The notes beneath the pieces are model-generated. The model worked only from the letters and a program-made list of their open reading frames with translations, ran no database searches and was not told the origin of the DNA. From Haliotis cracherodii (taxonomy: Eukaryota): a stretch of DNA of 64,000 nt. The position numbers were made by a program, and so were the translations under genes. Shown here piece by piece: positions 3,685 through 39,394 of the stretch. Location of the stretch: the NCBI RefSeq assembly GCF_022045235.1, contig NW_027266319.1, forward strand, positions 55,986,001 to 56,050,000. Direction: 5' to 3'. How positions within the stretch are numbered: the stretch's first letter is position 1; each line of letters opens with the position of its first letter.

Positions 3685-3904
3685 GTGAGTAATACTTTAT
3701 GCACTATCTGTCTGATTAGTTTACGTGTAACTTATCATTTCAGTTGGCATTGGTTACAAAATGTGGATTTAACTGAGGATTTAATTGTTTGTAATGATAG
3801 TCAGTCGTCAAATCCATTACATCTTAAGCAATCAACGTTTCATAAGGCAATCAGCAACAATAATCACACCCACATGAGAATGCGGCTTCTTTAAACAATT
3901 CAGT

Positions 3905-4165
3905 GGGGCACGGGGGGCTCAGTCGTCTAAGGCGCCGCAATTCGCTGTGCTGAGTTGCGTTCCTTGGGCACGCCAGATTGTGGGTTTGAATCCCGGTTCA
4001 CCCCGATTATGTTTCTACGTTTGTAAGCACCATACCCGTGCTCGTGGGTCTCGCCGAAGTGGTAAACGTCTAAAACCTGCATCACTGCGGCCTTCCCTCC
4101 CATATTAAGCTGACACGCCGTGATATAACTGTTAATAGCTGCGTTAAACCCAACTCGCTCACACG
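3905..4165 (+). mobile_element. tRNA-derived SINE (family 1) in intron 1 of A2; same insertion in A1, A3-A6; other copies about 10786-11048 (+), 12115-12270 (-), 37145-37360 (-), 52490-52940 (-)
   Basis: tRNA-like head with A-box-like ggctcagtcgtctaaggcgc and B-box-like gggtt(c/t)gaatccc, and a (CACT)n/(CTCA)n tail. A TSD-like taaaacaatt flanks it on both sides in A5. Absent from A7. Confidence 0.8.
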
Positions 4166-4203
4166 CTAAATCAATTTATTTTCACTGCAGAATACATCCC
4201 AAG

Positions 4204-5426: not shown

Positions 5427-5674
5427 GTCAAATGTAAGGTGGAGCAAATCTTACTGCAATGATCCGTTTTATACAGTAGAAACCGTCATCCGTTCAACAT
5501 AACTGTATCTGAAAATGTATGCTTCAGCAATAATTTCATGTCAAATATGCCAAGATCATATGATTTGATGTATTTCTTTTGTAGATCACTCTATTGAAGA
5601 GACACTGGCATCGCACTTTGAAGGCGATTTCGAGGATGTATTCCTGAATAGTGTTCCCACAAGTCAATAGTTTC

Positions 5675-5680
5675 AATAAA
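5675..5680 (+). terminator. Polyadenylation signal of A2 (equivalents at 9117, 13986-13991 minus, 20561, 22183-22188 minus, 29995)
   Basis: AATAAA about 250 nt after the stop, followed by a GT-rich tract (ctttgttgtgtctt); conserved in A2-A7. Confidence 0.65.
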
Positions 5681-6077
5681 TAATTATAACAATCACCTTT
5701 GTTGTGTCTTGCTCATTAAAGACGTCTTTACAGGTGTCATTTCAGACAACAGGTGATCCAATATGTAATGCTTGTATCTGATTTCTAATGTGTTCACTAC
5801 CACCATCTCGTTCAACATAATATTGATCTGCAATCGTACAACAACATAATCAGCAAAATGTATATTATATCAAGTATATCTGATATACAATATTTGTTTT
5901 GTTTGCTGTTTGTTTAATCGTACAACATTACCAGCAAAGGTAGTTCCTCAAAAGGAGATATGACATGAACATATGTATGTTCACATTGTTCTACACTGAC
6001 ATCTTTTGCAGTTTTAAAACAAATATATTCAAATAATATCATCATGAGATGAGAAAGGTATATGATGTTTAATTGTT

Positions 6078-22436: not shown

Positions 22437-23659
22437 TCACTGCTCCAAGTTGTTGATGCTCCTTGCGAACTCTTCCAAACTCACGCTTGAGTCTCCTAAA
22501 TGGAGAAAGGTTGTTGCAGTCAGTCAGAATAAATGTTCAGGAGTCAGATTTATTCGGGAAAAGGGTCCACATTACCCATGAGAGTAAAACAATACAAACA
22601 TTTGACAAATAATTACATTATTTTAAAAGTAATAAACATTTCATTTGTATCAATGAAGTTGAAGGCAAAAGCTCTTACCATTTTCATCTGAGAACGAAAG
22701 GAGCTCCATGGCCGATCGTCTGTCCATTAGCGTCTCAGCTTCGGACAGGTCAATTGTGCCGTCCATGTTTGTATCAAGGTTATCCACATTACGTTTGCCT
22801 TGAAAGAAAATAGTCATGTTTGGAAAGATACAAAATGAAAGAACACGAATGCATTTTCGGTTAAGGAATATGAGATAGTGGTCACTTTTAATCAGGCTAT
22901 GAGTATTGATATCAAATGAACATATTCATATACATCTACAGTAACATTCCAAAACATATACTCGTTTCCATTTCAAATCGTCATCGTATATAGCTCTTCG
23001 GCTGGCTGACTAAGATTTACATCAAAACAAATAGCGAACACCATTCTGTCTCATCCTGTAGTGCTTAATGACATGATCACATTTTCATTATGTTCGTTTT
23101 CTAGAATAGACTAGTCCATGTAATATTTTCATACATTCAAAAACAATGTTCGGTGTCCGTTTTCGTTCAGCAATATTCCAGGTAATATAACAGTGGGACT
23201 TAAATAACTGGGTGTGGCACAGACAATCCAGTGACTTATATCATGAGCATCGGTCTACACAACTGCATAATTATAGAAAGCATCCTTTCGGTTACAATTT
23301 TTACACTGAAAGCAGAGTTGGCCTTTTAGTCATTTAATTTATTACTTTCATTTGAACCTGATGTAAAAGAGAGACGTTAATGTACTTGATACATCACCGA
23401 TTTGGTCCTACTACAGCTGCTCATTGTTCTATAACTTAAACCGTAACTCCATTACAGTTTGGGAAAATAGAAGATACTGTATGTGAGGCACTTAATGAAG
23501 TACTCTTTGGCTTCACTCACCCAACAACACCCTGGCTCCAATCTTTGCTATTGTGCCAACTGTGCGCCATCTAACGAACCGTCGTCTCCGTCGTCCCCAG
23601 GCATCAGACTGAGGGATGGAGACTATGGCCACAAGCAGGAGGACAAGGAACAAACGCAT
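22437..23659 (-). CDS. Cationic peptide/EF-hand precursor, copy A6
   Basis: Minus-strand coding exons 23659-23521, 22798-22679 and 22495-22437. Carries the EAETLM variant; splice sites intact. Confidence 0.9.
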
Positions 23660-24177
23660 CTTGGGATGTATTCTGCAGTGAAAATAAATTGTTTTAGCGT
23701 GTGAGCGAGTTGGGTTTAACGCAGCTATTAACAGTTATATCACGGCGTGTCAGCTCAATATGGGAGGGAAGGCCGCAGTGATGCAGGTTTTAGACGTTTA
23801 CCACTTCGGCGAGACCCACGAGCACGGGTATGGTGCTTACAAACGTAGAAACATAATCGGGGTGAACCGGGATTCAAACCCACAATCTGGCGTGCCCAAG
23901 GAACGCAACTCAGCACAGCGAATTGCGGCGCCTTAGACGACTGAGCCCCCCGTGCCCCACTGAATTGTTTTAAGAAGCCGTATTCTCATGTGGTGTGATT
24001 ATTGTTGCTGATTGCCTCATGAAACGTTGATTGCTTAAGATGTAATGGGTTTGACGACTGACTATCATTACAAACAATTAAATCCTCAGTTAAATCCACA
24101 TTTTGTAACCAATGAAAACTGAAATGATAAGTTACACGTAAACTAATCAGACAGATAGTGCATAAAGTATTACTCAC

Positions 24178-24234
24178 CAGAAGGACACGAGACAGGTCAC
24201 AGTTGTTATGAATGTCGTGTCCCTGGTATTTATA
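24178..24234 (-). promoter_or_regulatory. TATA box and non-coding exon 1 of A6
   Basis: TATATAAATA variant plus GTGAGT donor on the minus strand. Confidence 0.7.
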
Positions 24235-25229
24235 TATTCTTTCCATTCATCAACCCGTGAAGTGAATCTGTTGCCAAAATATGTTAAGTGCCTGTTTGAC
24301 AGAAACGTGCAAATGTAAATATGAAAAGAGATAAGTATCTACTTAGTCCACACCTCCTTATTGTTGGGTTGGGTATGAAGTGTGTTTGTGTGTGATATTG
24401 ATTGAATGGCCATTTGATATTCTTGGGGTGATGGGGGTAATCAGTGAAAAAGGATTTGAAGAAATTACAGTTACGGAAGTGATGCATTATATGCACAACA
24501 ATAGCCTCGGGTACATATTTGAAAGACTAACTTACGAGCTGCGACGAATTACGGATTCTGTGTCCCCAGCGTACCTGTTTTGTAGGTTTCAAGCCATGGC
24601 GATATGGTATACATATGTTTGTGAATACAAGTAGGAATAGAAAAATACTTCGATCGTGATTCATAGGTTCTCAGAGAATGAACTCTACAATATTCAATGA
24701 GAAAGAAATTAGTTTAAACAAAGAGATCATGCATTTTTCACACTTAAGTAAACTACCCCAATTTGATATCACCTTTCTTGTTGACCTTTCCTGTGTGATA
24801 TATGTTAAAGTGATTGACAGATGTGACAGCAGCTGAACCAAAGTGGCCACAGGACGCCCCACCGAGACAATATCTGTAAAGTGCGCTTATACATTAAATT
24901 CAATTGACCCGTGACCCAGTGGTATTTTCATAATGCGTCAGTTGTTTTGATGGCTTCCAGTGTTTGCTGAATGGAAAATATATTTTTCTCAGAGATGGCC
25001 ATATGCACCACTGGTTCACAAATATTAGAAGTTGTAGCAATATACGGCACCTGATATTAAACCTTACGTGGAACGTATAAAATCACATATACCACGTGTG
25101 ATAATGTCACAACGATTATATCTTACTTCCCCGTTTCAATCGGCCATTGTAAAAGAATTGAAAACAGATAGAAAACAGCTGTTCGAATGAGCTGAGGTAT
25201 ACATTGATAACATACAACACAATATGAAA

Positions 25230-25610
25230 ACGGACAGGAGATTACCAAACAATTGGCCCAAAACATGCAGCCTGTTTCCTTCATAGCGGGGTATACAGGA
25301 TTTACATAAGTGTTCCTACAAGTAAATGGTTTCAATATATCGTTATAACAATCACCTTTGTCATGCCTTGCACATTAGATGTCTTAACAGCAGGTGATCC
25401 GATATGTCATGCTTGTAACAGATTTGCAATGTTTCATTGCCACAATCTCCTTCAAGATATGGATCTGCAATCGTACAAAAACATTATCAGCAAAAGTAGT
25501 TCCTCAAAGAGTTTTTCCATAAGGGTATGGATGTTTGCATTGTTTCACATTGAGATCTTTTGTAGTTTGTTTTCGAACATATCTAAAAAATATCATCATT
25601 AGATGAGACG
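25230..25610 (+). pseudogene. Scar of a deleted A copy: upstream promoter sequence fused directly to the 3' UTR end
   Basis: gcagcctgtttccttcatagcggggtatacagga (homologous to 3271-3305) joins gtgttcctacaagtaaatggtttcaatatatcgttataacaatcacctttg (homologous to 5651-5701, with AATAAA mutated). An inverted copy of the same junction lies at about 27520-27605. Confidence 0.7.
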
Positions 25611-26199
25611 AGACCCCTGTGAAGATCCAGGGTAGAATAGGTCTTCTCAACCCATGCTTCCCGTACAAGGCGGTTATGCTTGTCGTAAGAGGCGACTAAC
25701 GAGATCGGGTGGTCAGACTCGCTGACTTGGTTGATGCATGTCATCAATCCCAAATGCGTGGATCGATGCTCATGATATAAATCACTGGATTGTCTGGTCC
25801 AGACTCGATTATTTACAGACCGCCGTCAACAAACCAACAACAACGACAACAACTCAACATGATACATTAAAATCATCAACAATTAATGACCCATCAAGAG
25901 AGCCATTTACAACCTTAGGTCATCTATTTATTTAACGTTACCTATTATATGCTTACCTTGCGGGACACCCTGATTGTAATCGTAAATATCAGACAAGGTG
26001 GAACCCATATGTTCCTGGAAAGGCCCCATCTCATTCAGATCTTTTAAAATTCCATATTTCCAGATGGTATCATAAGCTTTCTCTCAGTCGGAAAGTTTTG
26101 ATATAGTGTGTTGTTTATTTATTATGCCATTTTTAACAAACGTTTCCAATCGCACCAAATGGTCAATGCTGCTTCTATTTTTCCTACACTTCTTCATCA

Positions 26200-27490
26200 T
26201 CAAAATATGGCCCTGTGATTTAAATAACGATGAAGATTACAATGAAGTATTTTCATTACATGAGTAAATACCGCCCTGGAGCAAGCTCGTGATATAGCAG
26301 CGGGATGATAATATCCACTATCAGTTTTTGAAGCATTTACCTGAATCATGTAATGAAATACGTTTACACATATTTGACCTACTATGGCCGTCAGTGAGTT
26401 TTCCTCCTTCGTGGCATAATGCCATTGTCGTCCCCATAGCAAAACCTGGCCGGGATCATATAGATCCCTCAAATTACCGCCCTATATGTTTAACCAGTTG
26501 CGTTTGAAAAACCTCGGAACGAATGGAAATAATATAGATAAGTTTGGCATCTGGAAACCAAGAATCTTATTATTGATATTCAATGTGGTAGAAGTAGAAG
26601 TACTATTGAACATTAAGTTCGATTACAATCCTTTGTTAAAAATGCTATAGTCATTAAACAACGGTATCAATCTTCTTTGATCTTGAGAAAGCATACGGTA
26701 CTATCGTGAAGCATGGAATTTTAAAGGATTTACATGCTTTCGGCTGGGGGGTTTACCTCATTTTATATCACTGTTTGTAACAGACAGTTAAATTCAAGTT
26801 TGAAAGGACTAAACCCTGTCTGATTATTATTTTGTCTGTCACATTATTTGGTATTATTCAGTAGATGGATCACTTTTCGTGGATAATTTTAATATTGTTT
26901 GTTGTTACAAATCTGTAGTGGTCCCATGAAAATGGGTTTAAATTTCCTAAATCAAAAATTAATTGTATACACTGCAGAAAATATAAGACACATAAGAAAC
27001 GCGAATTATGTTTGAATATGGACGAACATTAACCAGTAATTTAAACAACATATAGATACTATTTCGTCTCAGGCCTTGCCTTGGAGAATTTCGAACCTTT
27101 ACTTTACATAGTCTGTCGTGGATACGGAGTAGCCATCCTTTAAAGAACACAGCCTGAAATTATCACCATCACCAAATTACATTTTAATCACTCAAATCCA
27201 GCTTGTGTATTTAATCCTGTTTACGAAGATATTTACAATACAAAATCATCTCTTATTCCATCACTTGAAATAAGAATCATATCTGCCATTTCTGCTATTC
27301 ATAATATACTTCAAGATATAGCCCCCGTCCAACCCCTCCTTGGCAAATGGTAAGGCCAAATGTAGACCTGACATTAACTAAACTGAAGAAATCAGACACA
27401 AACCCGCTAATTAATAAACAAGATTACAACCAATTAAAAAACACAAATGAAGTGGGCCAGGGGATATAGGAATGGAGTTCGTCCGTCCGT
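26200..27490 (+). mobile_element. Decayed LINE reverse-transcriptase fragment (duplicate of 31100-32570 with internal deletions)
   Basis: DPSNYRPICLTSCV motif; many stops and frameshifts; colinear with the 31-32.5 kb copy. Confidence 0.75.
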
Positions 27491-28296
27491 TTCTCAATGG
27501 GGACAACTTTTCTAAAAATGTGCAAGGCATGACAAAGGTATTGTTATAACAATATATTGAAACAATTTACTTGTAGAAACACTAATGGAAATCCTGTATA
27601 CACGTATAAGCGCACTTTACAGATATTGTCTCGGCGGGGCGTCCTGTGGCCACTCTGGTTAAGCTGCTGTCACATCTGTCAATCACTTTAACATATATCT
27701 CAGGGGAAAGGTCAACAAGAAAGGCGACATCAAACTACAGTAGTTTACATAAGTTTGATAAATACATGATCCATCTCTTTGAACTAATTTCTTGCTCATT
27801 GAATATTGTAGAGTTCATTCTCTGAGAACCTATGAATCACGATCGAAGCATTTTTCTATTCCTACTTGTACTCACAAACATGTATGTACCATCAATTTCA
27901 CACAAACATGTATGTACCATATCGCCATGGCTTATATAACGGGTACACTAGGGACACAGAATTCGTAAATAGTCGTAGCTCGGAAGTTAGTCTTTCAAAT
28001 ATGTACCTGAGGCTGTTGTTGTGCATATAATGCACCACTTTCGTAACTGTAATTTCTTCAAATCCTTTTTCACTTATTACCCCCATCACCCCAAGAATAT
28101 CAAATGGCCATTCAATCAACATCACACACAAACACCACAGTTCATGCCAAACCCTCCCGAAGATGACAATTAGGAAGTGTGGACTAAAGTAGATACTTAT
28201 CTCTTGTCATATTTACATTATCACGTTTCTGTCAAACAAGCACTTAATATATTTTGGCAACAGATTTACTTCACAGGTTGTTCAACGGAAAGAATG

Positions 28297-28353
28297 TATA
28301 AATACCAGGGTCAGTACATTCATGATAACACTGACCTGACTCGTGTCCTTCTG
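28297..28353 (+). promoter_or_regulatory. TATA box and non-coding exon 1 of A7
   Basis: TATAAATA and CTG|GTGAGT are conserved despite divergence of the surrounding DNA. Confidence 0.7.
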
Positions 28354-28539
28354 GTGAGTAATACTTTATGCACTATCTGTCTGATTAGTTTACGTGTAAC
28401 TTATCATATTATTTTTTTCGGAGCAGACTGTCTTAAAGTTGCCATTGTTACATAATTTACCCGAGACAATTGTTTGTAATGATAATCATGGGTGTAATTT
28501 GGGGAAATTCTTTCTTTTCACTACAGAATACATCCCAAG

Positions 28540-29745
28540 ATGCGTTTGTTCCTTGTCCTCCTGCTTGTGGCCATAGTCTCCATCCCTCAGTCTGATGCCT
28601 GGGGACGACGGAGACGACGGTTCGTTAGATGGCGCACAGTTGGCACAATAGCAAAGATCGGAGCCAGGGTGTTGTTGGGTGAGTGAAGCCAAAGAGTACT
28701 TCATTAAGTGCCTCACATACAGTATCTTCTATTTTCTAAAAACTGTAGATTTAGTTAAGGTTTAGGTTTATAGGAGAATCAGCGGCTTTAGTAGGCTGTA
28801 GTGAGACATAGTGGGTGATGTATAAAGTGCATTAATCTCACTCCTTTACATCATGTTCAAATGAAGGTAATAAATGAAAAGACAAATCTGCATTCAGTGA
28901 AAGAAATATAACCGACAAGATGCGTTCTATAATCATGCCACTGCTTAGACCAATGATGTAAGTCAATGGATTGTCTGGTTCACACTCCATTATTTAAAGA
29001 CTGCTGTTATATTACCTGGAATATTGCTGATAGAAAACAACCACAGACACAATAAAATATTGTTTTACAATACATGAATGTTTCGTTTGAAAAGTCTATT
29101 CTAGTACACAAACATAATGAAAATGTGCACATGTCATTAAGCAATACAGACTGTTTATAAGTGTATCTTAGACACTCTCCAGAAGAGCTACATGCGGTGA
29201 GATCAAAAGGAAAAGAGTAATGGAATAGCTTTGTGTTCAGTGTATTTAAATACTCATATTCATCGCCTGATTAACATGACTACTAACACATCCTCCATAA
29301 CCGAAACTCCATTCATGTTCTTTCATGTTGTATCTTTCCAAACATGACTATTTTCTTTTAAGGCAAACGTAATGTGGATAACCTTGATACAAACAAGGAT
29401 GGGACAATTGACTTGTCAGAAGCTGAGACGCTAATGGACAGACGATCGGCCATGGAGCTCCTTTCGTTCTTAGATGAAAATGGTTAGAGCTTTTGTATTC
29501 AATTTCATTGATACAAATGATTTGAATTTCTTCATTTGTCAAGAAGTCTTGATAGCATAGAAGATGAATACTTGTGTGTTTGTATTTACATTGACCATCA
29601 TTGGGAAATTGGACCCGTTTTAAAGTATATCCGATAGACTCATGAATATTTATTCTGACTGACTGCAACAACCTTTCTCCACTTAGGAGACTCAAGCGTG
29701 AGTTTGGAAGAGTTCGCAAGGAGCATCAACAACTTGGACCAGTGA
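28540..29745 (+). CDS. Cationic peptide/EF-hand precursor, diverged copy A7
   Basis: Coding exons 28540-28678, 29363-29482 and 29687-29745. Signal and mature peptide identical to A2; propeptide NVDNLDTNKDGTIDLSEAETLMDRRSAMELLSFLDENGDSSVSLEEFARSINNLDQ. The exon 3 donor is a weaker GTTAGA. Introns are clearly diverged and intron 1 lacks the SINE. Confidence 0.85.
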
Positions 29746-31099
29746 GGCAAATGTAAGGTAGAGCAAATCCTTCTGCAATGATTCCGTTTTGTAAAGTAGA
29801 AACCGCCATCCGTTCAACATGTCTGTATGTGAAAACGTATGTTTAAGCAACGATTTCATGTCAAATATGCCAAGATCATATGATTTGATGTACTTCTTTT
29901 GTAGAGCACTCCATCGAATAGGCACTGGCATCGCACTTGGAAGACGTTCTCAATGATATTTTCCTGAATAGTGTTCCTACTGAAAGATGGTTTCAATAAA
30001 TCACTATAGCAATCACCTTTGTTGTGCCTTGTTAATTACATGTCTTAATAGCAGTCATTTTAGACAGCAGGTGATGCAATATGTAATGCTTGTAACTGAT
30101 TTCCAATGTGTTCAATGCAACCATCTCCTTCAAGATATGGATCTGCAATCGTATAACAACATAATCAGCAAAATGTATATCAAGACTTAGTACAACTGAC
30201 ATACAATAGGTTTGCTTTGAAGATGAACAATGGGTATCTTTTCTGCATCATAATACGCAGTGCATATAATTCACATTAACATATCTCGGGACAATCCACT
30301 CATGGCAATCTCTCTTTAAAAATGACAAACGCTTTCCAGGATCATGACAAATCTATTCTGAAAGCAGAGTTCATTGTGCGATTCCCATTATAACATAAGC
30401 ATATGTTTATGTATCACTGTCAAATAGTGATGATACCGTGTGTGTGCAATTTAGGAATGCATTTAAAAGAAACAAACAAATTCCTGTTTTCATGGCAACA
30501 AGTTTGACTTTGACCCTGTTCAACAACATCGAGAACAACCTCGACATGATACATTAACATCATCAACAAATAGGGACCCATCAACAGAGCTATTTAAAAC
30601 CTTAGGTCAACTATTTATTTAACGTTACCGATAATATGCTACCTCGAGGGACACCCTGATTGTAATCGTAAATATCAGACATGGTGGAACCCATATGTTC
30701 CTGGAAAGGCCCCATCTCATTCAGATCTTTTAAAATTCCATATTTCCAGATGGTATCATAAGCTTTTTCTCAGTCGGAAAGTTTTGGTATAGTGTGTTGT
30801 TTATTTATTATGCCATTTTTAACAAACGTTTCCAATCGCACCAAATGGTCAATGCCGCTTCTATTTTTCCTAAACTGCCTCTGGGTTCCTGGAAATGCCT
30901 ATCTGTTAAAAAATGTGACACAGTGGGGTAAAGGACCTATCAGCCCCATCTCATTCAGATATTTTAAAATTCCATATTTCCAGATGGTATCATAAGCTTT
31001 AGGCTATGGTGTGTTGTATATTTATTAATCAATTTTTAACAAACGTTTCCAATCGCACCAAATGGTCAATGCTACTTCTATTTTTTCTAAACTTCTTCA

Positions 31100-32570
31100 T
31101 CATCAAAATATGGCCCTGTGATTTAAATAACGATGAAGATTACAATGTATTTTCATTACATGAGTTAAATACCGACCCTGAGCAAGCAGGGGATGATAAT
31201 ATCCCTTATCAGTAGTTGAAGCATTTACCTGAATCATGTCTTGAAAGAACGTTTACACATATTTGACCTACTGTGGCCGTCAGTGAGTTTTCCTCCTTCG
31301 TGGCATAATGCCATTGTCGTCCCTATAGCAACACATGGCCGGGAACATACAGATCCCTCAAATTACCGCCCTATATGTTTAACCAGTTGCGTTTGCAAAA
31401 CCGTGGAACGAATGAAAATAATAGATAAGTTTGGCATCTGGAAACCAAGAATCTTATTATAAATATTCAAAGTGGTAGAAGTACTATTGAACATTAAGTT
31501 CGATTACAATCCTTTGTTAAAAATGCTATAGTCATTAAACAGCGGTATCAATTTTCTTTGAGCTTGAGAAAGCATACGGTACTACCGTGAAGCATGGTAT
31601 TTTAAAGGATTTACATGCTTTTGGCTGGGGGGTTTACCTCATTTTATATCACTGTTTGTAACAGACAGTTAAATTCAAGTTCGAGAGTACTGAACCCTGT
31701 CTGATTATTATTGTTATAATCAGGATCAGGGTGTTCCACAAGGCAGTATTTTGTCTGTCACATTATTTAGTATTATTCAGTAGATGGATCACTTTTCGTG
31801 GATAATTTTAATATTGTTTGTTGTTACAAATCTGTAGTGGTCCCATGAAAATGGGTTTAAATTTCCTAAATCAAAAATTAATTGTATACACTGCAGAAAA
31901 TATAAGACACATAAGAAACGTGAATTATGTTTGAATAGTTTTGATCACCATCTACGTTTCTAACCGCACATTAAATACCTTAAAGGTAAATGACTGAAGG
32001 CATTTGATTTGTTGAAAGCTGCAACTAATTCAAGGGGGGAGGGGATCAGACATCCCTCTTTACACAAATCACTGATCCATTTACTTGATCATGGCGCCAT
32101 CGTCTATGGAGGAGCATTAACCAGTAATTTAAAACACATATAGATACTATTCATCATCAAAGCCTCAGGCCTTGCCTTGGAGAATTTCGAACTTCTACTT
32201 TGCATTGTCTGTAGTGGATACGGAGTAGCCATCCTTTACAGAACACAGCCTGAAATTATCACCATCACCAAATTATATTTTAATCACTCAAATCCAGCAT
32301 GTGTATTTAATCCTGTTTACGAAGATATTTTCAGTACGAAATCATCTCTTATTCCATCACTAGGAATAAGAATCAAATCTGCCATTTCTGCTGCTCATAT
32401 TATACTTCAAGATATAGCCCCCGTCCAACCCCTCCTTGGCAAATGGTAAGGCCAAATGTAGACCTGACATTAACTAAACTGAAGAAATCAGACACAAACA
32501 ATCAATCAATTAAGAAACACCTATGAAGTGGGCCAGGGGGTACGGGAATGGAGTTCGTTCATCCGTTTCT
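31100..32570 (+). mobile_element. Decayed LINE (I/Nimb-like) RT fragment
   Basis: FPPSWHNAIVVPI...DPSNYRPICLTSCVCKTVERM, LEKAY and QGVPQGSILSVTLF motifs in shifting frames. Confidence 0.8.
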
Positions 32571-32754
32571 CAATGGGGACAACTTTTCTCACAAACAAGG
32601 TAAGTCAAAGAAATGAACTTGTACACACTAAACTGGTCATGATCTCAGATGAGTTCGAAAATAAGTGTCGTAATTTCATTTTAACAGAGTTATTGCCCTT
32701 GCCTGGTGTTTTACTGCGTGAAATGGGGACAAGTTTTCTCAGAAACTACTGAAG

Positions 32755-33380
32755 TATCATATGATTTGATGTATTTCTTTTGTAGAACACTCCTTCGAAT
32801 AGGCACTGGCATCGCACTTGGAAGACGTTCTCAAGGATGTTTTCCTGAATAGTGTTCATACAAAAAAATGTTTCAATAAATCATTATAACAATCACCTTT
32901 GTCTAGCTTGCTCATTAGACGTCTTAACAGCAGTCATTTTAGACAGCAGGTGATGCAATATGTAATGCTTGTAACAGATTTCTAATGTGTTCACTGCAAC
33001 CATCTCCTTCAGGATTTGGATCTGCAATCGTACAACCACGTAATCAGCAAAATGTATATTATATCAAGTACAACTGATATACAATAGGTTTGCTCTAAAC
33101 GTGAAACTTGGGTATCTTTTCTACGTCATAATACACAGTGCATATCATTCACATTAATAAAGGAACATCTCTGGGGACATTCCACTCATGACAATCTTTC
33201 ATAAAAAGTTTAAAACACACTTTCATGATCATTCGAAAGGTCTTCTGAAAGTCCATTGTACGGTTACCATTATAACAGAAGCATATTTTATGTATCACTG
33301 TCAAATAGTGATGATACCGTGTGTTTGGATATTTAGGAATGAATTTAAAAGAAAAAAATTCCTGTTTCCATGGCAACGAA
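32755..33380 (+). pseudogene. Orphan 3' UTR and downstream flank of an A-type gene (no exons upstream)
   Basis: Homologous to about 29875-30500, the A7 3' UTR and flank, including AATAAA at 32875-32880. Confidence 0.7.
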
Positions 33381-34241
33381 GTTCCGAATCCCAATTCCAC
33401 AGTATTGTTTTCAAAGCTCAATAACTACGCTTGTATGCAGGCAGACAGACAGATTAGATAGAACTTCTCTCATCAAGTTAGACCTAAAGTGAGGATAACA
33501 AAGTCGGAGGATTTGGTCTTTCGAATGTGTGGGGGCCGGGGAATATGTCATCTTCTAATGACTCTTGTTCGAAATATTTCTTTATCAATAAATGAAAATA
33601 AACAAAAACAAGTTCATCGAGTGTCGTCTTTAGGCCGAATTGACGTTAGTTTTGGACACATGTGTGAATATGGACGTAAAAAGGTCTTAGTTTTTAGGAA
33701 ATGAACGTTGACTAAAATTATGAGGGATGATATTGAAAAGACGAGGATATATCCGTCCATGCAAAAATACCCGTTTCTGTACAGGTTTCACTCAGGATTT
33801 TTAACCTTAATTATTCTTGTGTTAATGACGAGTATATGGATACAAAAGAATTAATATTTCTTGAACAGTCTTATAACCTCGGACAGAAATATGTTAACTC
33901 CACTGCATCTAGGATTGGTCTAACACATAATAGTAACAGAGATGACTCTCATTCTAACTAGGGAGCCTTGTGGTCTGATGCGACGCAATTCGCTGCGTCA
34001 AGTTCCCTCCCTTATCTGTGCTAGGATCCGAGGCCGATATAGGTCCTTTGGTCAGCAACCATATCGGTGTATGGTCACTTCTTTGGTACAACCACATCTG
34101 TGCTCGTTGGCTTGATCTAAATGGTGAACCTCTACATCACTTTCGACTTTACATTATCCGAGTTTAGATGAGCAGATTCGATCAAGCACATTTACAAATT
34201 TGAGGTTGTCAAAACATGAGAAAGATATCGCTTAGTCACAC

Positions 34242-34247
34242 TTTATT
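34242..34247 (-). terminator. Polyadenylation signal of gene B
   Basis: AATAAA on the minus strand about 60 nt downstream of the TAA stop. Confidence 0.55.
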
Positions 34248-34305
34248 TGCAAGGAATAGCATGACGTCTCGATTCGCGAAAGTTGACATGTGTGAGACTG
34301 TCGAA

Positions 34306-36753
34306 TTATCTTTCCTCTCCCTCTTCTGGAGCTCGTCTCATATCAGCATCTGTCGACAGACGTGAAACCAAAGAATATAAATGATAGGCTAGTAATATAA
34401 TGTTAATATTTCTGAGAAATTGCATAATCAATATAACTATTATCAACAAGTGTTATAAGCCAGCTCATTGCTCAGCAACCACCAGTGGCTGAAGTGATGG
34501 CGTTAATGCTGTTGGGGTATAGTACAGTTATAAATAATCTTGTTATACCCAAATATATTTTTTCTCGTAGCTTTGTGCTTGATATATCCTGCGGAAGCCT
34601 TTTATGGCCATTTGGGGTTTTGGGGTTGTTTTTTATACTATCTTGAAATTTCAAGATACAGAAGTTGATACTATCTTACAATTTCAACTTAGTATCTTGA
34701 AATTTCAAGATAGTATCTAGAAATTTCAACTTCTGTATCTTGAAATTTCAACTTAGTATCTTGAAATTTCAACTTAGTTTCTTGAAATTTCAAGATAGTA
34801 TCTAGAAATTTCAACTTCTGTATCTTGAAATTTCAACTTAGTATCTTGAAATTTCAACTTAGTTTCTTGAAATTTCAAGATAGTATCTAGACATTTCAAC
34901 TTAGTACCTTGAAATTTCAACTTAGTATCTTGAAATTTCAACTCAGTTTCTTGAAAAATTTCAAGATAGTATCGAAAAAAAATTAAAAAACAAATGGCCC
35001 CAAAAGGCTTCCGTGCATATCAAACTCAATCTCTCTGAGCAATCGTTATCTCTTGTTTGAATGGTAAGAAGAGGCCCAGGTGGTCAGCCTTAATGACTTT
35101 GAAGATTGCGAGTCACAGTTCACCTTTGGGCGTGATCCTTGCTCTTGATTTAAGTCACTGGCCCAGAATTTGTTTATAGACTGCTGGAATATAGCCGGAG
35201 TATTCCTGAGTTAAATAAAATACATAAAATACATTAAATAGCAAACAAAACACCATGTCTTAAATAGTTGTCACAATCAACATATCGTACCGTGATCATC
35301 CTCTACATCCAGGCCTGGCTCAGACTCATCAGCAGCCCGCCCCACGTATACAGGGTAGCCTATAAACACATGCAGGGAAATACGGAACTGGGACCACCTG
35401 GTATGTGACACGACAAGATAGAAGCATCAGATGAGATGAGGTGAAATGGGGTTTAACGTTGCGTTCAAGATTATTGCGCTTATACAGCGACGTATCTCAG
35501 ACAGAATTGTATTGACTTAGCTGAATTGAATGTATGAATTGTACTGACTCCTAGCCGACCAGTTCTTGTTTTATCCCCTTAATGACGAGCGCCAGACTTG
35601 GTGACGAAATGCCATATTTTAACGTCCCTTGGACGGGGATAGAACCACCGACCCTCCGCTCTCCGGATGTATGAGAGTACATACAAATAGATGATATATC
35701 AGTTCGTGTTTTCACATTCTAGTTTAATACATGTTCTGTCCAACTATAGGTTCAAATATCTTATTTCAAACAAGGTCGACGTTAAACAACAAACAAATAA
35801 AGAAATGAGGATTGGGCGGTAGCAGTGTATGACATGAATGACTGTTTGTCATCGAATCCACATTGCTGTTTAGACAAGAGACTTTGTAAGAAGCATGCCT
35901 TTCTTCATCCAGTTGTGAATTGTACCCGGTTGAATGAGATGGTAATGTGTCTGCTAAACCTTACAGCCTCATACGGCAGCATGATTTGTATACTTGAAAA
36001 TTTGAAATTTGAGTGCTCAATGAACCCAGGCCCGGGGTATCCCGTGAAGATCCGGTGTAGAATAGGTCTTCAACAACCCATGCTTGCCGTAAAAGGTGGA
36101 CCCGTGAAGTTACGGGTTAGAATAGTCTTCAACAACCTATGCTTGCCGTAAAAGGCGACTATGCTTGTCGTAAGAGGCGACAAGCGGGGTGAACAGGCTC
36201 GCTGACTTTGTTGATGCATGGCATCGTATTTACATATATGGATTATTTACATATATGGAATATTGCTGAGTGGGGCGTTAAACAACAAACAAACAAAACT
36301 GAGATCATAAAACTATACCACCATGAGCATTTACTTCGTGAATGGAATCTGACAAATTATAAATGGACGTATTATTATATGTTACAAACTAGGACCGTCT
36401 ACTCTGGTCTAGTGGGGCTGCCTGGCGCTCGACATTAAGGGACTGAAACAAAGACTGGTCGGCGCGGAGTATACTGAGTGTGTATATCTGAGTGGGATAG
36501 CCATGTTAAACTGCGGAAGGGTATTTACATGTGTTAGCACTTTAAAACCAGCATTAGTCCAGGCAAGTGCAAGACGCCACGCACACGCACGCAAGGATAT
36601 GACAGGGCGATAAAACTACTGTTTCATCTCCGTGTATGTTGTACCATGTCGCACAATTCTTCGAATGATGCGTCTGAGACGGCGGCGTCGCCATCCTTCA
36701 GCGTCAGGCAGCATGACAAGCGCGAGGAGCAGGAAGACGAGGAGAAGACGCAT
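34306..36753 (-). CDS. Gene B: divergent secreted Arg-rich peptide precursor (73 aa) with acidic propeptide lacking EF-hands
   Basis: Minus-strand coding exons 36753-36645 (MRLLLVFLLLALVMLPDAEGWRRRRLRRIIRRIVRH+G|gtacaa), 35359-35291 (tttatag|GYPVYVGRAADESEPGLDVEDDH|gtacga) and 34349-34306 (cgacag|DADMRRAPEEGEER*). Both introns are phase 1, as in gene A. AATAAA lies about 60 nt after the stop. Exon joining is inferred; no transcript evidence is available. Confidence 0.75.
34590..35015. mobile_element. MITE-like element with ~25-bp TIRs and an internal 21-bp palindromic minisatellite, in intron 3 of gene B
   Basis: Left end gcggaagccttttatggccatttg; right end caaatggccccaaaaggcttccgt. Interior 34635-34972 is made of tatcttgaaatttcaa(gatag/cttag) units. 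Confidence 0.7.
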
Positions 36754-37362
36754 GCTGCAGATGTTGAAGATGCTGCAGATCCTGTCAGAGTCAGTGATAA
36801 CTAGACAAAAATAGAACATATCTTAGGAGGTAGATATATCGGTAGAAGAGAGCAGATCTCAAACAGTGAATGGGTGAGTGAGTGCCCCGTGAGTGCCCCT
36901 GATTATGTGTGCCAGCATCAGACCCGTACTTGTGTGTTTTAAGTAGTAAACGATTAAAACCTGCATCCAATCCCTATTGGGATAAAACTGGCATGCCGCC
37001 ATATAACTGAAATACGGCGTTCAATGCGACGTTAAACTCAATCACTCTTTCCCAAAAGTACCTGTCCCGAAGGCAGATTTCTAAACTAACAGACGCTGTA
37101 CTTTATCACCACAGTTTATATCTCAAAGGAAAAATCATGTTAAGGAGTGAGTGAGTGTATTCCAGTTATATCACGGCGTGTGAGCTTAATGTTGGAACAA
37201 AGCCCCAAGTGATACAGGTCTCAGACGTTTACCACTTCGGTGAAACCCACGAGCACAGATATGGTGCTGACAAACCTAGAAACATAATCGGGGCGAACCG
37301 GGATTCGAACCCACAATCATAGGTTTCTGGCATGCCCAAGGGACGCAACTCTGCACAGCTAC

Positions 37363-37600
37363 TTCACACAAATATCTAAAAAAAAAAAACATACCTCACA
37401 CAGATATCGGTAGAACCCAACACATCTCACGCAAATATCGGTAAAACCCAACATATCTCACACAGATATGGGTAGAACCAAACATATCTCACACAGACAT
37501 CGGTAAAACCAAACATACCTCACACATATATCGGTAGAACCAAACATATCTCACACAAATATCGGTAAAACCAAACATATCTCACACAGGTATCGGCTGA
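37363..37600 (+). repeat. ~31-bp minisatellite (about 7 copies) in intron 1 of gene B
   Basis: Repeated cacacagatatcggtagaaccaaacatatct with variants. Confidence 0.85.
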
Positions 37601-38071
37601 ACAGAAAATGTCTGAACCAGACATCCATGGAACCGATCAGATCTAAACATGACATCAGTAGTCAAGCCAAATACAAATACAAATGACAGAAAAGATTGCA
37701 AACCGACAACATGAGAATATCTCGGACATCCACAATGTTACCGTGCATGTCGACATGTTCAGCCAGGAGAGCAACGTAATGAAACAGTACAGCCTATTTG
37801 GCGGAACCTATTGAAAACGTTTATCATACCTCTAAGTCAGAATGATGAGATCTGATGGGTCCAAGTGAATGATAAATTACTGGATTTCTGAGGGGGAGAA
37901 TAAATCCCGAATACACCGTTTCGAAGCAAAAAGCTTTCCGGGTCAAGGACAGTCACGTGACATAGCACAGGTTAGCCTCAGATCAAGAGAACAGCCGTTT
38001 TCTATCAATTTTGAATTCGTTATAATTCTTTTACAATGTCTTGTAGTAAAACATGTCGATAAGATAAATTT

Positions 38072-38215
38072 GTTGCAGCAGGATCACTCGGGGTACATGG
38101 GTTTTGACGCGACCCACGTTAGTTTTTATACCACTTTAACACCTGCTCGTCGTAAAAAAAAAAAACAACGCGGGTCGCATAAAACCCCATGTACCCCGAG
38201 TGATTCTGCTACAAC
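38072..38215. mobile_element. Small hairpin/MITE-like element (~144 bp)
   Basis: gttgcagcaggatcactcggggtacatgggttttgacgcgacccacgtt pairs with aacgcgggtcgcataaaaccccatgtaccccgagtgattctgctacaac (~50-bp imperfect arms). Confidence 0.65.
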
Positions 38216-38431
38216 TTATAATATTCATCAACGGTAAAGCTCAGTTCAGTTTAACAAAAATATTCGATGATGCAAATCGATCGATTCAATCACAATGAAG
38301 ATGATGACAGTACTATTTACCATCTTAAAACAAACAACACGTGAACATTTCCATCATTTCTAACATACCTGTAGCAGAGTAAATATATATTATAAAGACG
38401 CCGACGATATATATAACACAACATGTCTTAC

Positions 38432-38487
38432 CGTGTGCCGAATCTGTGATGAAGTGCGGCATACGAGATGTGGTGGTCCCATTTATA
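38432..38487 (-). promoter_or_regulatory. Putative TATA box and non-coding exon 1 of gene B
   Basis: Minus-strand TATAAAT at 38487-38481, then donor ACG|GTAAGA at 38432/38431. TATA-to-donor distance is 55 nt versus 56 nt in gene A, without sequence similarity. Confidence 0.55.
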
Positions 38488-39394
38488 TGCGTCGAATGCT
38501 GAAACTGCAGATAAAGATATATGTGTCAAATCACAGGTGTCAAATCATAGTATTACTTTTTCACACTTATATTTGAAATATGAGACAGATGATAATTGGA
38601 CGACATCAATGTGTTGATCGAACACGGTACACACGCCACGCGAAAATTTATTATAAAGGGGTTAGCGGAGGGTGGGTGGGAGGGTGGTTGGGTGGGTGCT
38701 GTGTATCAAAAATGCACGTAGTTTTAATTTTAACACCATTCGTCACCACTCGCCCCTTTCCGTAACATGTAACCATATTCGGCTTGTCCCGGAATAACAC
38801 GAGTTGGTCACGAATGGTTTCAACAACTGATTTGTAGGGATACCCTGATCCCATTCGTCACCACTCGCCCCTTTCCGTAACCTGCAAGAAGACTCGTCCC
38901 CCTATCGATGAATGTTATGTGCAAAAATACGACAAACCAATCAGAAAGCGCGTAGGATTTCAAGTTCTTTGTCATAGAATCCCTCAGAAATAATTTCTGT
39001 TTTTACATACGTCTTGCATCTAAAGATATACCCAAGACACAGTTAAATTCGTTCAATCATACTGTATAATTTCGCATGTCCTGATGTGCTTTTAATTGCA
39101 TCTGAAATATAAATGATATATGGGGAAATATATGTGAACCATTGCGCAACGAGTTGACAATTGTTTTAGGTATGCCCGTTTGCGCTAAGACGGAACCCGG
39201 TTGCAAAAATGGCCACGAGAGGGGCACGAGTCGCTATTCGGCTTGTCCCGGAAGAACGCGAGTTGGTCACGAATGATTTGTAGGGAGACCCTGATCCCTA
39301 CAAGTTCTTGTGTCCTAAGAAAGGGATCGGGTGGTTATGATGTGACCAGGCTGATTACCGTCGTCCTACCCCAACGGCGTGGATCGTTGATTGT

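Follow-up and report, generated by a model that had tools for sequence, protein, structure and literature searches.

Gene B of the black abalone, a transcribed and spliced, EF-hand-less member of an undescribed gastropod precursor family and probable defence-peptide precursor

Can a few very short open reading frames on one strand of an abalone contig make up a working gene, and what could such a gene be for? The window considered here is a 64,000-nucleotide (nt) stretch of the black abalone, Haliotis cracherodii (contig NW_027266319.1, positions 55,986,001 to 56,050,000). It holds gene A and, at 34,242 to 38,487, gene B, which a first-pass annotation made from the letters alone had proposed as a second, highly divergent member of the same gene type with a different peptide and no EF-hands. 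We found that gene B is a real gene, spliced and transcribed, whose product is a small secreted precursor. Within an undescribed family it is a shortened member, and we think it probable that it serves as a defence-peptide precursor acting on microbial membranes via a processed, amidated peptide, a function that we infer from its features.

All parts of gene B lie on the minus strand. The three coding exons that had been proposed (36753-36645, 35359-35291 and 34349-34306) joined in frame when computed and gave the claimed precursor of 73 amino acids; the joined translation also confirmed that both coding introns are in phase 1. Exon 2 (36645..36781) starts with 5' untranslated region (UTR; 36781-36754) and has, from the ATG at 36753, a coding part of 109 nt, which translates into a signal peptide (codons 36753-36694) followed by a Trp/Arg-rich peptide (codons 36693-36646). 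Its last base, 36645, is the first base of the codon for Gly37, which is split G|GC at 36645/35359. Exon 3 (35291..35359; 69 nt, phase 1-1) is bordered by a ...TTTATAG acceptor and a GTACGA donor and encodes Gly-Tyr-Pro-Val-Tyr-Val, a Gly-Arg pair (codons 35342-35337) and 15 acidic-rich residues. Exon 4 (34225..34349, its 3' end approximate) follows a ...CGACAG acceptor and contains the acidic tail with an internal Arg-Arg and the 3' UTR; the TAA stop codon (34308-34306) and an AATAAA signal (34247-34242) were read from the sequence. Cleavage of the signal peptide after Gly20 is predicted, from the -3/-1 rule only. The residue counts given earlier hold, with 9 Arg in the 22-residue peptide and 13 Asp/Glu plus 3 Arg in the 29-residue tail. 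The corresponding net charges are +9 for the peptide, -10 for the tail and 0 for the pro-form.

Is this gene model used? An exon-2 search of sequencing runs retrieved ten runs, all from one related organism, and four of these were compared with positions 34100-38600: X1 and X2, which were guessed to be RNA, and two others, X5 and X8. The runs were available as assembled contigs, the depth of which is no measure of expression. X5 and X8 were DNA-like, with low, even depth in unique bins and contigs collinear over the exon-intron borders. In X1 and X2, depth was zero in the unique intron bins 36818-36968, 37422-37572 and 34100-34250, where the DNA-type runs have depth. Furthermore, each of these two runs contained one intron-less contig of constant depth, 282 letters long at 3.7 in X1 and 314 letters long at 9.59 in X2.

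The exon borders could be located in both contigs from the coordinates and lengths of the contig pieces, on which the junction calls rest. One piece of the X1 contig covers 36782-36644. Differences from the window at 35319 and 35313 then fall 29 and 23 letters from an edge, placing this edge at 35291, and a further difference at 34302, 12 letters before the end of the contig, places that end at 34291. The lengths close exactly (16 + 138 + 69 + 59 = 282). They do so as well for the X2 contig, which lies on 36801-36644 and ends at 34265 (3 + 157 + 69 + 85 = 314). The junctions 36645/35359 and 35291/34349 are thus supported by the intron-less contigs of two RNA-type runs. Since both contigs show 36645|35359 and 35291|34349, the GTACAA donor of exon 2 is in use, as had been predicted, and is not read through: from 36644, the contigs continue into exon 3.

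Matters are less clear upstream, where a putative non-coding exon 1 is placed at 38432..38457, with the GTAAGA donor after 38432 marking its 3' end and a guess as its 5' end. The TATA box (TATAAAT, 38487-38481), which was read from the sequence and is identical in the second gene B copy described below, precedes this donor by 49 nt, and this spacing matches the 50 nt found in gene A. In favor of the exon, the X1 contig breaks at 36782, the predicted acceptor, and carries 16 further letters that are not on intron 1; moreover, X1 and X2 have slight depth in the bin 38328-38478 and none in 38479-38600. Against it, the X2 contig is collinear to 36801, 20 letters into the proposed intron 1. The spacing argument stood, while the contigs disagree on the candidate junction 38432|36781. 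No significant similarity of the gene B promoter and exon 1 to the upstream regions of gene A or of paralogs was detected.

To which family does the product belong? Its enumeration by a genome search, which the first-pass annotation had suggested, was feasible. A six-frame search with exon 2 gave 49 exon-2-like matches in arrays on three chromosomes (E values of 1e-9 to 1e-14 against paralogs), and the translations of these 49 loci have in common the signal peptide and a start with Trp/Phe and poly-Arg. When a profile of 16 exon-2 peptides was run against 1.84 billion representatives, 13 proteins were found. The source was traced for 10 of them: seven are "uncharacterized" proteins from H. cracherodii, H. 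rufescens, H. rubra and Littorina saxatilis, and three are unnamed ENA sequences. One lancelet protein among the profile matches is probably spurious, and a follow-up search added two proteins of H. asinina. The family plan consists of a signal peptide, a Trp plus poly-Arg cationic peptide, a Gly-(Lys)-Arg site, an EF-hand domain and an acidic terminal piece. All family annotations read "uncharacterized protein" (e.g., XP_071084106.1 of H. cracherodii, XP_048244413.1 of H. rufescens and LOC124278758 of H. rubra), and a literature search found no paper on this family or its peptide motifs in abalone.

Two types of signal peptide occur, MRLFLVL...SDA in gene A and its relatives and MRLLLVF...EG in the subfamily of gene B. 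The latter comprises gene B, XP_071084106.1, the gene at C56:721780, an array on chromosome 23 and proteins of 134-137 amino acids from other species. As revealed by tblastn of annotated proteins on black-abalone loci, exon 2 of a normal subfamily member encodes the signal peptide and ~30 cationic residues, exon 3 encodes Gly|Tyr-x-Phe-Tyr-Gly-Arg and then EF-hand 1, exon 4 encodes EF-hand 2, and the last exon is acidic, with Asp-x-Asp-Leu-Arg-Arg-Ala. The neighbour XP_071084106.1 is without the EF-hand-2 exon. Gly-Arg is found at one position in all subfamily members, and Gly-Lys-Arg is found there in other subfamilies. Among four orthologous-type proteins from four species, identity is 89% in the signal peptide, 75% in the tail and 52% in the cationic part.

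One subfamily locus, L034 (C56:716500-724500), is the black-abalone ortholog of H. rufescens XP_048244413.1. Its exon 2 (C56:721780-721887) has an in-frame TGA directly after a 17-residue Trp/Arg peptide, while the H. rufescens ortholog is intact. EF-hand exons 3 and 4 and the terminal exon of L034 are intact or nearly so, and exon 3 is 100% identical to the ortholog at the protein level. Judged from these features, L034 would be a recent pseudogene or else a short form without the tail.

Within this family, gene B turned out to be a true paralog of gene A, as proposed: it shares the kind of signal peptide, the Trp plus Arg run and the phase-1 intron in a Gly codon, and it lies inside the gene A array. 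The description as a highly divergent member needs correction, since gene B did not diverge as an isolated copy of gene A and belongs to the distinct MRLLLVF...EG subfamily. Because this subfamily occurs in four Haliotis species, the gene B lineage is old, in line with the earlier view. The conserved family signal peptide, M-R-L-[LF]-L-V-[FL]-L-L ... P-x-x-[ED]-[GA], is present in gene B; in the alignment, gene B is 81% identical to L034, 69% to the paralog L035 and 41-56% to other types, and the first 13 residues of its signal peptide are identical to those of XP_048244413.1. Exon 2 aligns with P0004, a full-length H. rufescens relative, at a z score of 19.8. The run of Trp/Phe and Arg stands directly after the predicted cleavage site, and the peptide exon ends in a phase-1 intron within a Gly codon (36645/35359), as it does in gene A (4342/5065) and in L034 (G|GT). 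Between the cationic and acidic parts, the family's Gly-(Lys)-Arg is represented by a predicted site at Gly43-Arg44 (Tyr-Gly-Arg-Asp in the subfamily). The Asp-x-Asp-x-Arg-Arg-Ala motif of the MRLLLVF subfamily is present in the terminal acidic exon, and gene B shares the tandem-array location of the family.

Compared with the family, gene B is reduced in most of its parts. The cationic part is about half as long, with 16 residues encoded in exon 2 versus ~30; exon 3 has 69 nt versus ~120-141 nt; the EF-hand-2 exon is missing; the stop comes earlier; and the product has 73 amino acids versus 101-137. That gene B is without an EF-hand, as originally noted, was borne out: a Pfam search gave no match in exon 3, and the EF-hand columns of the alignment are empty for gene B. 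Weak EF-hand matches were obtained in Pfam with exon 3 of gene A. Exon 2 of gene B and two long plus-strand open reading frames inside its introns had no match in Pfam either, and an Rfam search and a tRNA scan (ARAGORN) of positions 34000-39000 made no call. Since normal members of the subfamily carry two EF-hands, the loss is derived within it, and gene B is best placed in the family by its descent, as a derived member without EF-hands, and not by the domains it contains.

How did a full-length precursor gene acquire this form? Two proposals of the first-pass annotation had to be given up here. It had taken the acidic tail for an unrelated sequence. At the DNA level, however, exon 4 and the 3' UTR align with the family's terminal acidic exon from the acceptor through the AATAAA, with z scores against shuffles of 7.9 for the last exon of L035 and 6.6 for that of L034; at the protein level, exon 4 aligns with P0015-17 (z 4.6-5.1). 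The TAA of gene B stands eight to nine codons ahead of the ancestral stop, and the old coding sequence is still readable in the 3' UTR. Exon 3 opens, in the same split Gly codon, with a head resembling that of the subfamily's exon 3 and its conserved Gly|Tyr-x-x-Tyr-Gly-Arg motif. For the body of exon 3, no signal was found against the canonical EF-hand exon 3 at the DNA level (z ~0), and there is a weak alignment with terminal-exon sequences (protein z 3.9 versus P0017; DNA z 2.1-3.6). With modest strength, this suggests that exon 3 combines the head of the canonical exon 3 with an acidic body of terminal-exon type.

The end of exon 2 has changed as well. The 26 nt that begin with the weak GTACAA donor (36644-36639) appear to be a former coding stretch (36619..36644) that is now the start of intron 2, and they align with the end of L034 exon 2 (z 4.8). 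At the ancestral donor position, gene B would be in phase 2 and out of frame with exon 3; the upstream GTACAA donor, seen in use in the contigs, restores phase 1. In place of the clean swap or loss of symmetric phase-1 exons that had been envisaged, several changes combined. As reconstructed from these alignments, the EF-hand-2 exon was apparently lost, the part of exon 3 that encoded EF-hand 1 was replaced or deleted, the donor of exon 2 shifted, and the last exon gained a premature stop. The tail of gene B is accordingly a remnant of the family's own propiece after the loss of both EF-hands.

Gene B exists in two copies. The second copy is 41.78 kb away and is ~97% identical including introns, with splice sites, TATA box and poly(A) signal all intact. 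The spacing of the flanking gene A copies is alike at both places, and the duplication therefore took in at least 13 kb (A-, A+, B-; window 23570-36753 and, outside the window, C56:56051347-56064533); from one copy of the block to the other, the distances separating the three genes deviate by 3 and 123 nt. In the 1.18-Gb assembly, the DNA of exon 3 and that of exon 4 were found in the two gene B copies only. When the exon-2 read-through frame (45 amino acids) was used for a word search, no protein of 25-79 amino acids came up, and a search with P0004 among proteins of 74-234 amino acids found six family proteins, gene B not among them. Since no database protein containing exon 2 turned up, gene B appears to be unannotated.

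Comparison of the window with DNA-type contigs of the related organism gave a non-coding divergence of 4.3%. In the coding sequence, at least 3 of 222 sites differ, counting the differences listed (Poisson p 0.014); one of these, Ala18Val, affects the signal peptide, and two are synonymous. None of the differences listed falls into the peptide codons of exon 2. This low coding versus non-coding divergence is a hint, suggestive only, of constraint.

The introns of gene B also contain repeats. Tandem repeats were detected at 34672-34973 (intron 3; 21/85-bp unit, ~14 copies) and at 37387-37596 (intron 1; 31-bp unit, ~7 copies), and the copy number of the intronic tandem repeats is unequal between the two gene B copies. 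High-copy interspersed repeats are located at 37157-37359 and 36041-36297 in gene B introns and at 3890-4170 in intron 1 of gene A, with summed contig depths of 1e5-1e6 in all runs. One element resembling a short interspersed nuclear element is common to intron 1 of gene A and of gene B; ARAGORN and Rfam call nothing there.

What could the product do? Removal of signal peptides by signal peptidase, cleavage at basic residues, carboxypeptidase trimming and amidation by peptidylglycine alpha-amidating monooxygenase are known processing steps. Gene B has kept its signal peptide, an amphipathic segment of 16 residues rich in Arg and Ile, the Gly-Arg site and, at the end, the acidic module. According to our proposal, removal of the signal peptide after Gly20 would leave a charge-neutral pro-form of 53 residues, in which the acidic tail (-10) may mask the cationic head (+9) through the secretory route. 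Cleavage after Arg44, trimming of the Arg and use of Gly43 as the amide donor would then yield a C-terminally amidated peptide of ~22 residues (residues 21-42). This peptide might act on microbial membranes through its poly-Arg anchor and an amphipathic helix. Since Gly-(Lys)-Arg is kept across subfamilies, it supports a processing site, and the conserved Arg-Arg of the tail could be a second cleavage site.

Further features are consistent with a defence role. The variable cationic part beside the more conserved signal peptide and tail would fit such a role as a supporting point, and this combination of conserved signal and variable cationic part is a pattern of antimicrobial peptide (AMP) and toxin families (PMC5577615). 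The large tandem arrays, which include pseudogene-like members, would likewise fit and lend support. According to published work (PMC12371492), antimicrobial potency rises strongly where a poly-Arg motif adjoins a helical segment. An AlphaFold model of P0004 predicts a helix for the cationic part and disorder for both the Gly-Arg linker and the terminal acidic piece; the model is a weak hint only, because of its low confidence (predicted local distance difference test score of 59).

Several observations weigh against a functional defence precursor. Cleavage at monobasic sites follows a rule that calls for a basic residue at P4, P6 or P8. The Gly-Arg site of gene B is monobasic and none of these positions is basic, and therefore the C terminus of the product is uncertain. 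The amphipathic helix periodicity noted in the first-pass annotation held in part: the hydrophobic moment of this Arg/Ile stretch is highest at 90-100 degrees per residue, as in a helix, but it is barely above that of composition-matched shuffles (p 0.04-0.11), so we gave it limited weight. Contig depth in the RNA-type runs was low (3.7 in X1 and 9.6 in X2), the gene carries degenerative changes (EF-hand loss, donor shift and early stop), and the conservation test counts only the differences listed (at least three). Finally, the two gene B copies differ by three non-synonymous changes versus one synonymous change, which shows no constraint.

Some of these observations could be read more radically. 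Very short exons, a weak donor and the missing Pfam matches are what a chance arrangement of open frames and splice-like sites, with no gene at all, would offer. This is hardly credible in view of the intron-less contigs with exact junctions in two runs, the family-wide homology of exon 2 (in the E values as in the profile matches) and the DNA homology of the last exon to paralogs, and we regard it as refuted. More serious is the view that gene B, though transcribed and spliced, derives from a full-length EF-hand precursor gene, has no function and is decaying towards a pseudogene. Both EF-hands are lost, the stop in the last exon is premature relative to L035, a frameshift in exon 2 is seemingly bypassed by the weak GTACAA donor, and the low contig depth and the substitutions between the copies point the same way. 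Moreover, members of the MRLLLVF subfamily do decay, since the close paralog L034 has the in-frame TGA in black abalone and an intact ortholog in H. rufescens. However, the frame of gene B is intact over two junctions in both copies and in the related organism. Among the differences listed, the peptide codons are unchanged, and one signal-peptide change and two synonymous changes stand against the 4.3% non-coding divergence; charge balance and the Gly-Arg site are kept. On this evidence, decay seems unlikely to us, while still carrying some weight.

The product could also be real and serve another purpose, as a signalling molecule (neuropeptide or hormone), as a cell-penetrating or nucleic-acid-binding peptide, or as a component of mantle or shell secretion. 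A signal peptide, a Gly-basic amidation site and an acidic spacer also belong to the general grammar of neuropeptide precursors. In addition, secreted abalone EF-hand proteins have been linked to shell formation (PMC10741955), though the layout of the protein in question differs. Yet +9 within 22 residues, a poly-Arg run included, would be an atypical charge for a neuropeptide, and the hypervariable cationic part beside a conserved signal, together with the big tandem arrays, resembles effectors and not receptor ligands. Gene B also is without the calcium-binding part that mineralisation would need. We therefore consider a purpose outside defence quite improbable and favor the reading of gene B as a real, transcribed and shortened precursor of a defence peptide.

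Among described systems, the mussel myticalins and modiocalins are the closest, judged by precursor and gene plan as given in their descriptions. Like gene B, their precursors have a signal peptide, an Arg-rich cationic peptide, a basic site and a negatively charged extension at the C terminus (PMC5577615, PMC12294457). Myticalins share with the gene B family the conserved signal, the hypervariable cationic part, a Gly that often precedes the basic cleavage/amidation site, and tandem clusters of paralogs and pseudogenes. Their genes have a non-coding exon 1 (putative in gene B), an exon 2 that opens with the ATG and encodes the peptide, and a phase-1 intron. In contrast to gene B, myticalin genes have three exons, with a single phase-1 coding intron just after the Lys-Arg in exon 2, whereas gene B has four exons (the putative exon 1 included), two phase-1 coding introns, a monobasic Gly-Arg in exon 3 and no Pro-Arg-Tyr repeats. 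Antimicrobial activity was measured for myticalins. Myticalins are reported as limited to Mytilida (PMC5577615, PMC12294457), and none of the 10 source-traced profile matches came from a mussel.

Other AMPs resemble gene B in single traits. Fish piscidin TP4 and other natural AMPs (PMC12371492) are, like the gene B peptide, short, linear and free of Cys, with 4-5 Arg adjoining an amphipathic helical segment. The poly-Arg of TP4 is C-terminal and that of gene B is N-terminal, and genes and precursors are unrelated, making this an analogy only. The linear cationic AMP hdMolluscidin from abalone gill (PMC5577615, PMC11767717) is likewise abalone-derived, Cys-free and strongly basic. A described protein weighed as a possible relative, Hdh-SMP5 (PMC10741955), was dismissed: its signal peptide is 16 residues long, its three EF-hands occupy different positions, and it is rich in Asp/Ser/Val, with no Arg-rich part.

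A few other loci and sequences came to light. In the more distant family members L049 and L053 (C6:7.32 and 7.42 Mb), the Trp is followed by 8-11 Arg in a row; their middle part contains Cys/His, and no EF-hand loop is obvious in the tail. P0006, from an ENA contig of 621 nt, is a 64-amino-acid orphan with a mature start nearly identical to the gene B-type peptide, followed by Gly-Lys-Arg. Its signal peptide is different, with a Met-Lys-Gly start like the myticalin consensus, and a search for relatives of P0006 gave none. Downstream of exon 4 of gene A, past its apparent stop, an acceptor-like site and an acidic open frame ending just before an AATAAA were seen at window positions 5435-5690; read by eye, this frame might correspond to the terminal acidic exon that the gene B subfamily has.

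A bolder reading is that gene B is a selectively maintained "minimal" defence precursor, for which the EF-hand propiece is dispensable and the acidic tail is enough, and that the gastropod family and the bivalve myticalins would then follow one mollusc-wide plan for linear Arg-rich AMPs, as two branches of it or by striking convergence. We offer it tentatively and consider it doubtful. Few linear, cysteine-free AMPs are known from gastropods (PMC5577615, PMC11767717). If the bolder reading is true, the 22-mer in its amidated form would add a potent new peptide, and one from an abalone that is critically endangered and hit by disease. The black abalone has been devastated by a bacterial disease. 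Apparently missed by annotation, gene B codes for a peptide that ranks among the most cationic in a large, undescribed family. Because it is a natural EF-hand-less version of the precursor, it offers a direct comparison for the role of the calcium-binding propiece. Its donor shift, exon remodelling and early stop show how such effector genes are rebuilt after duplication.

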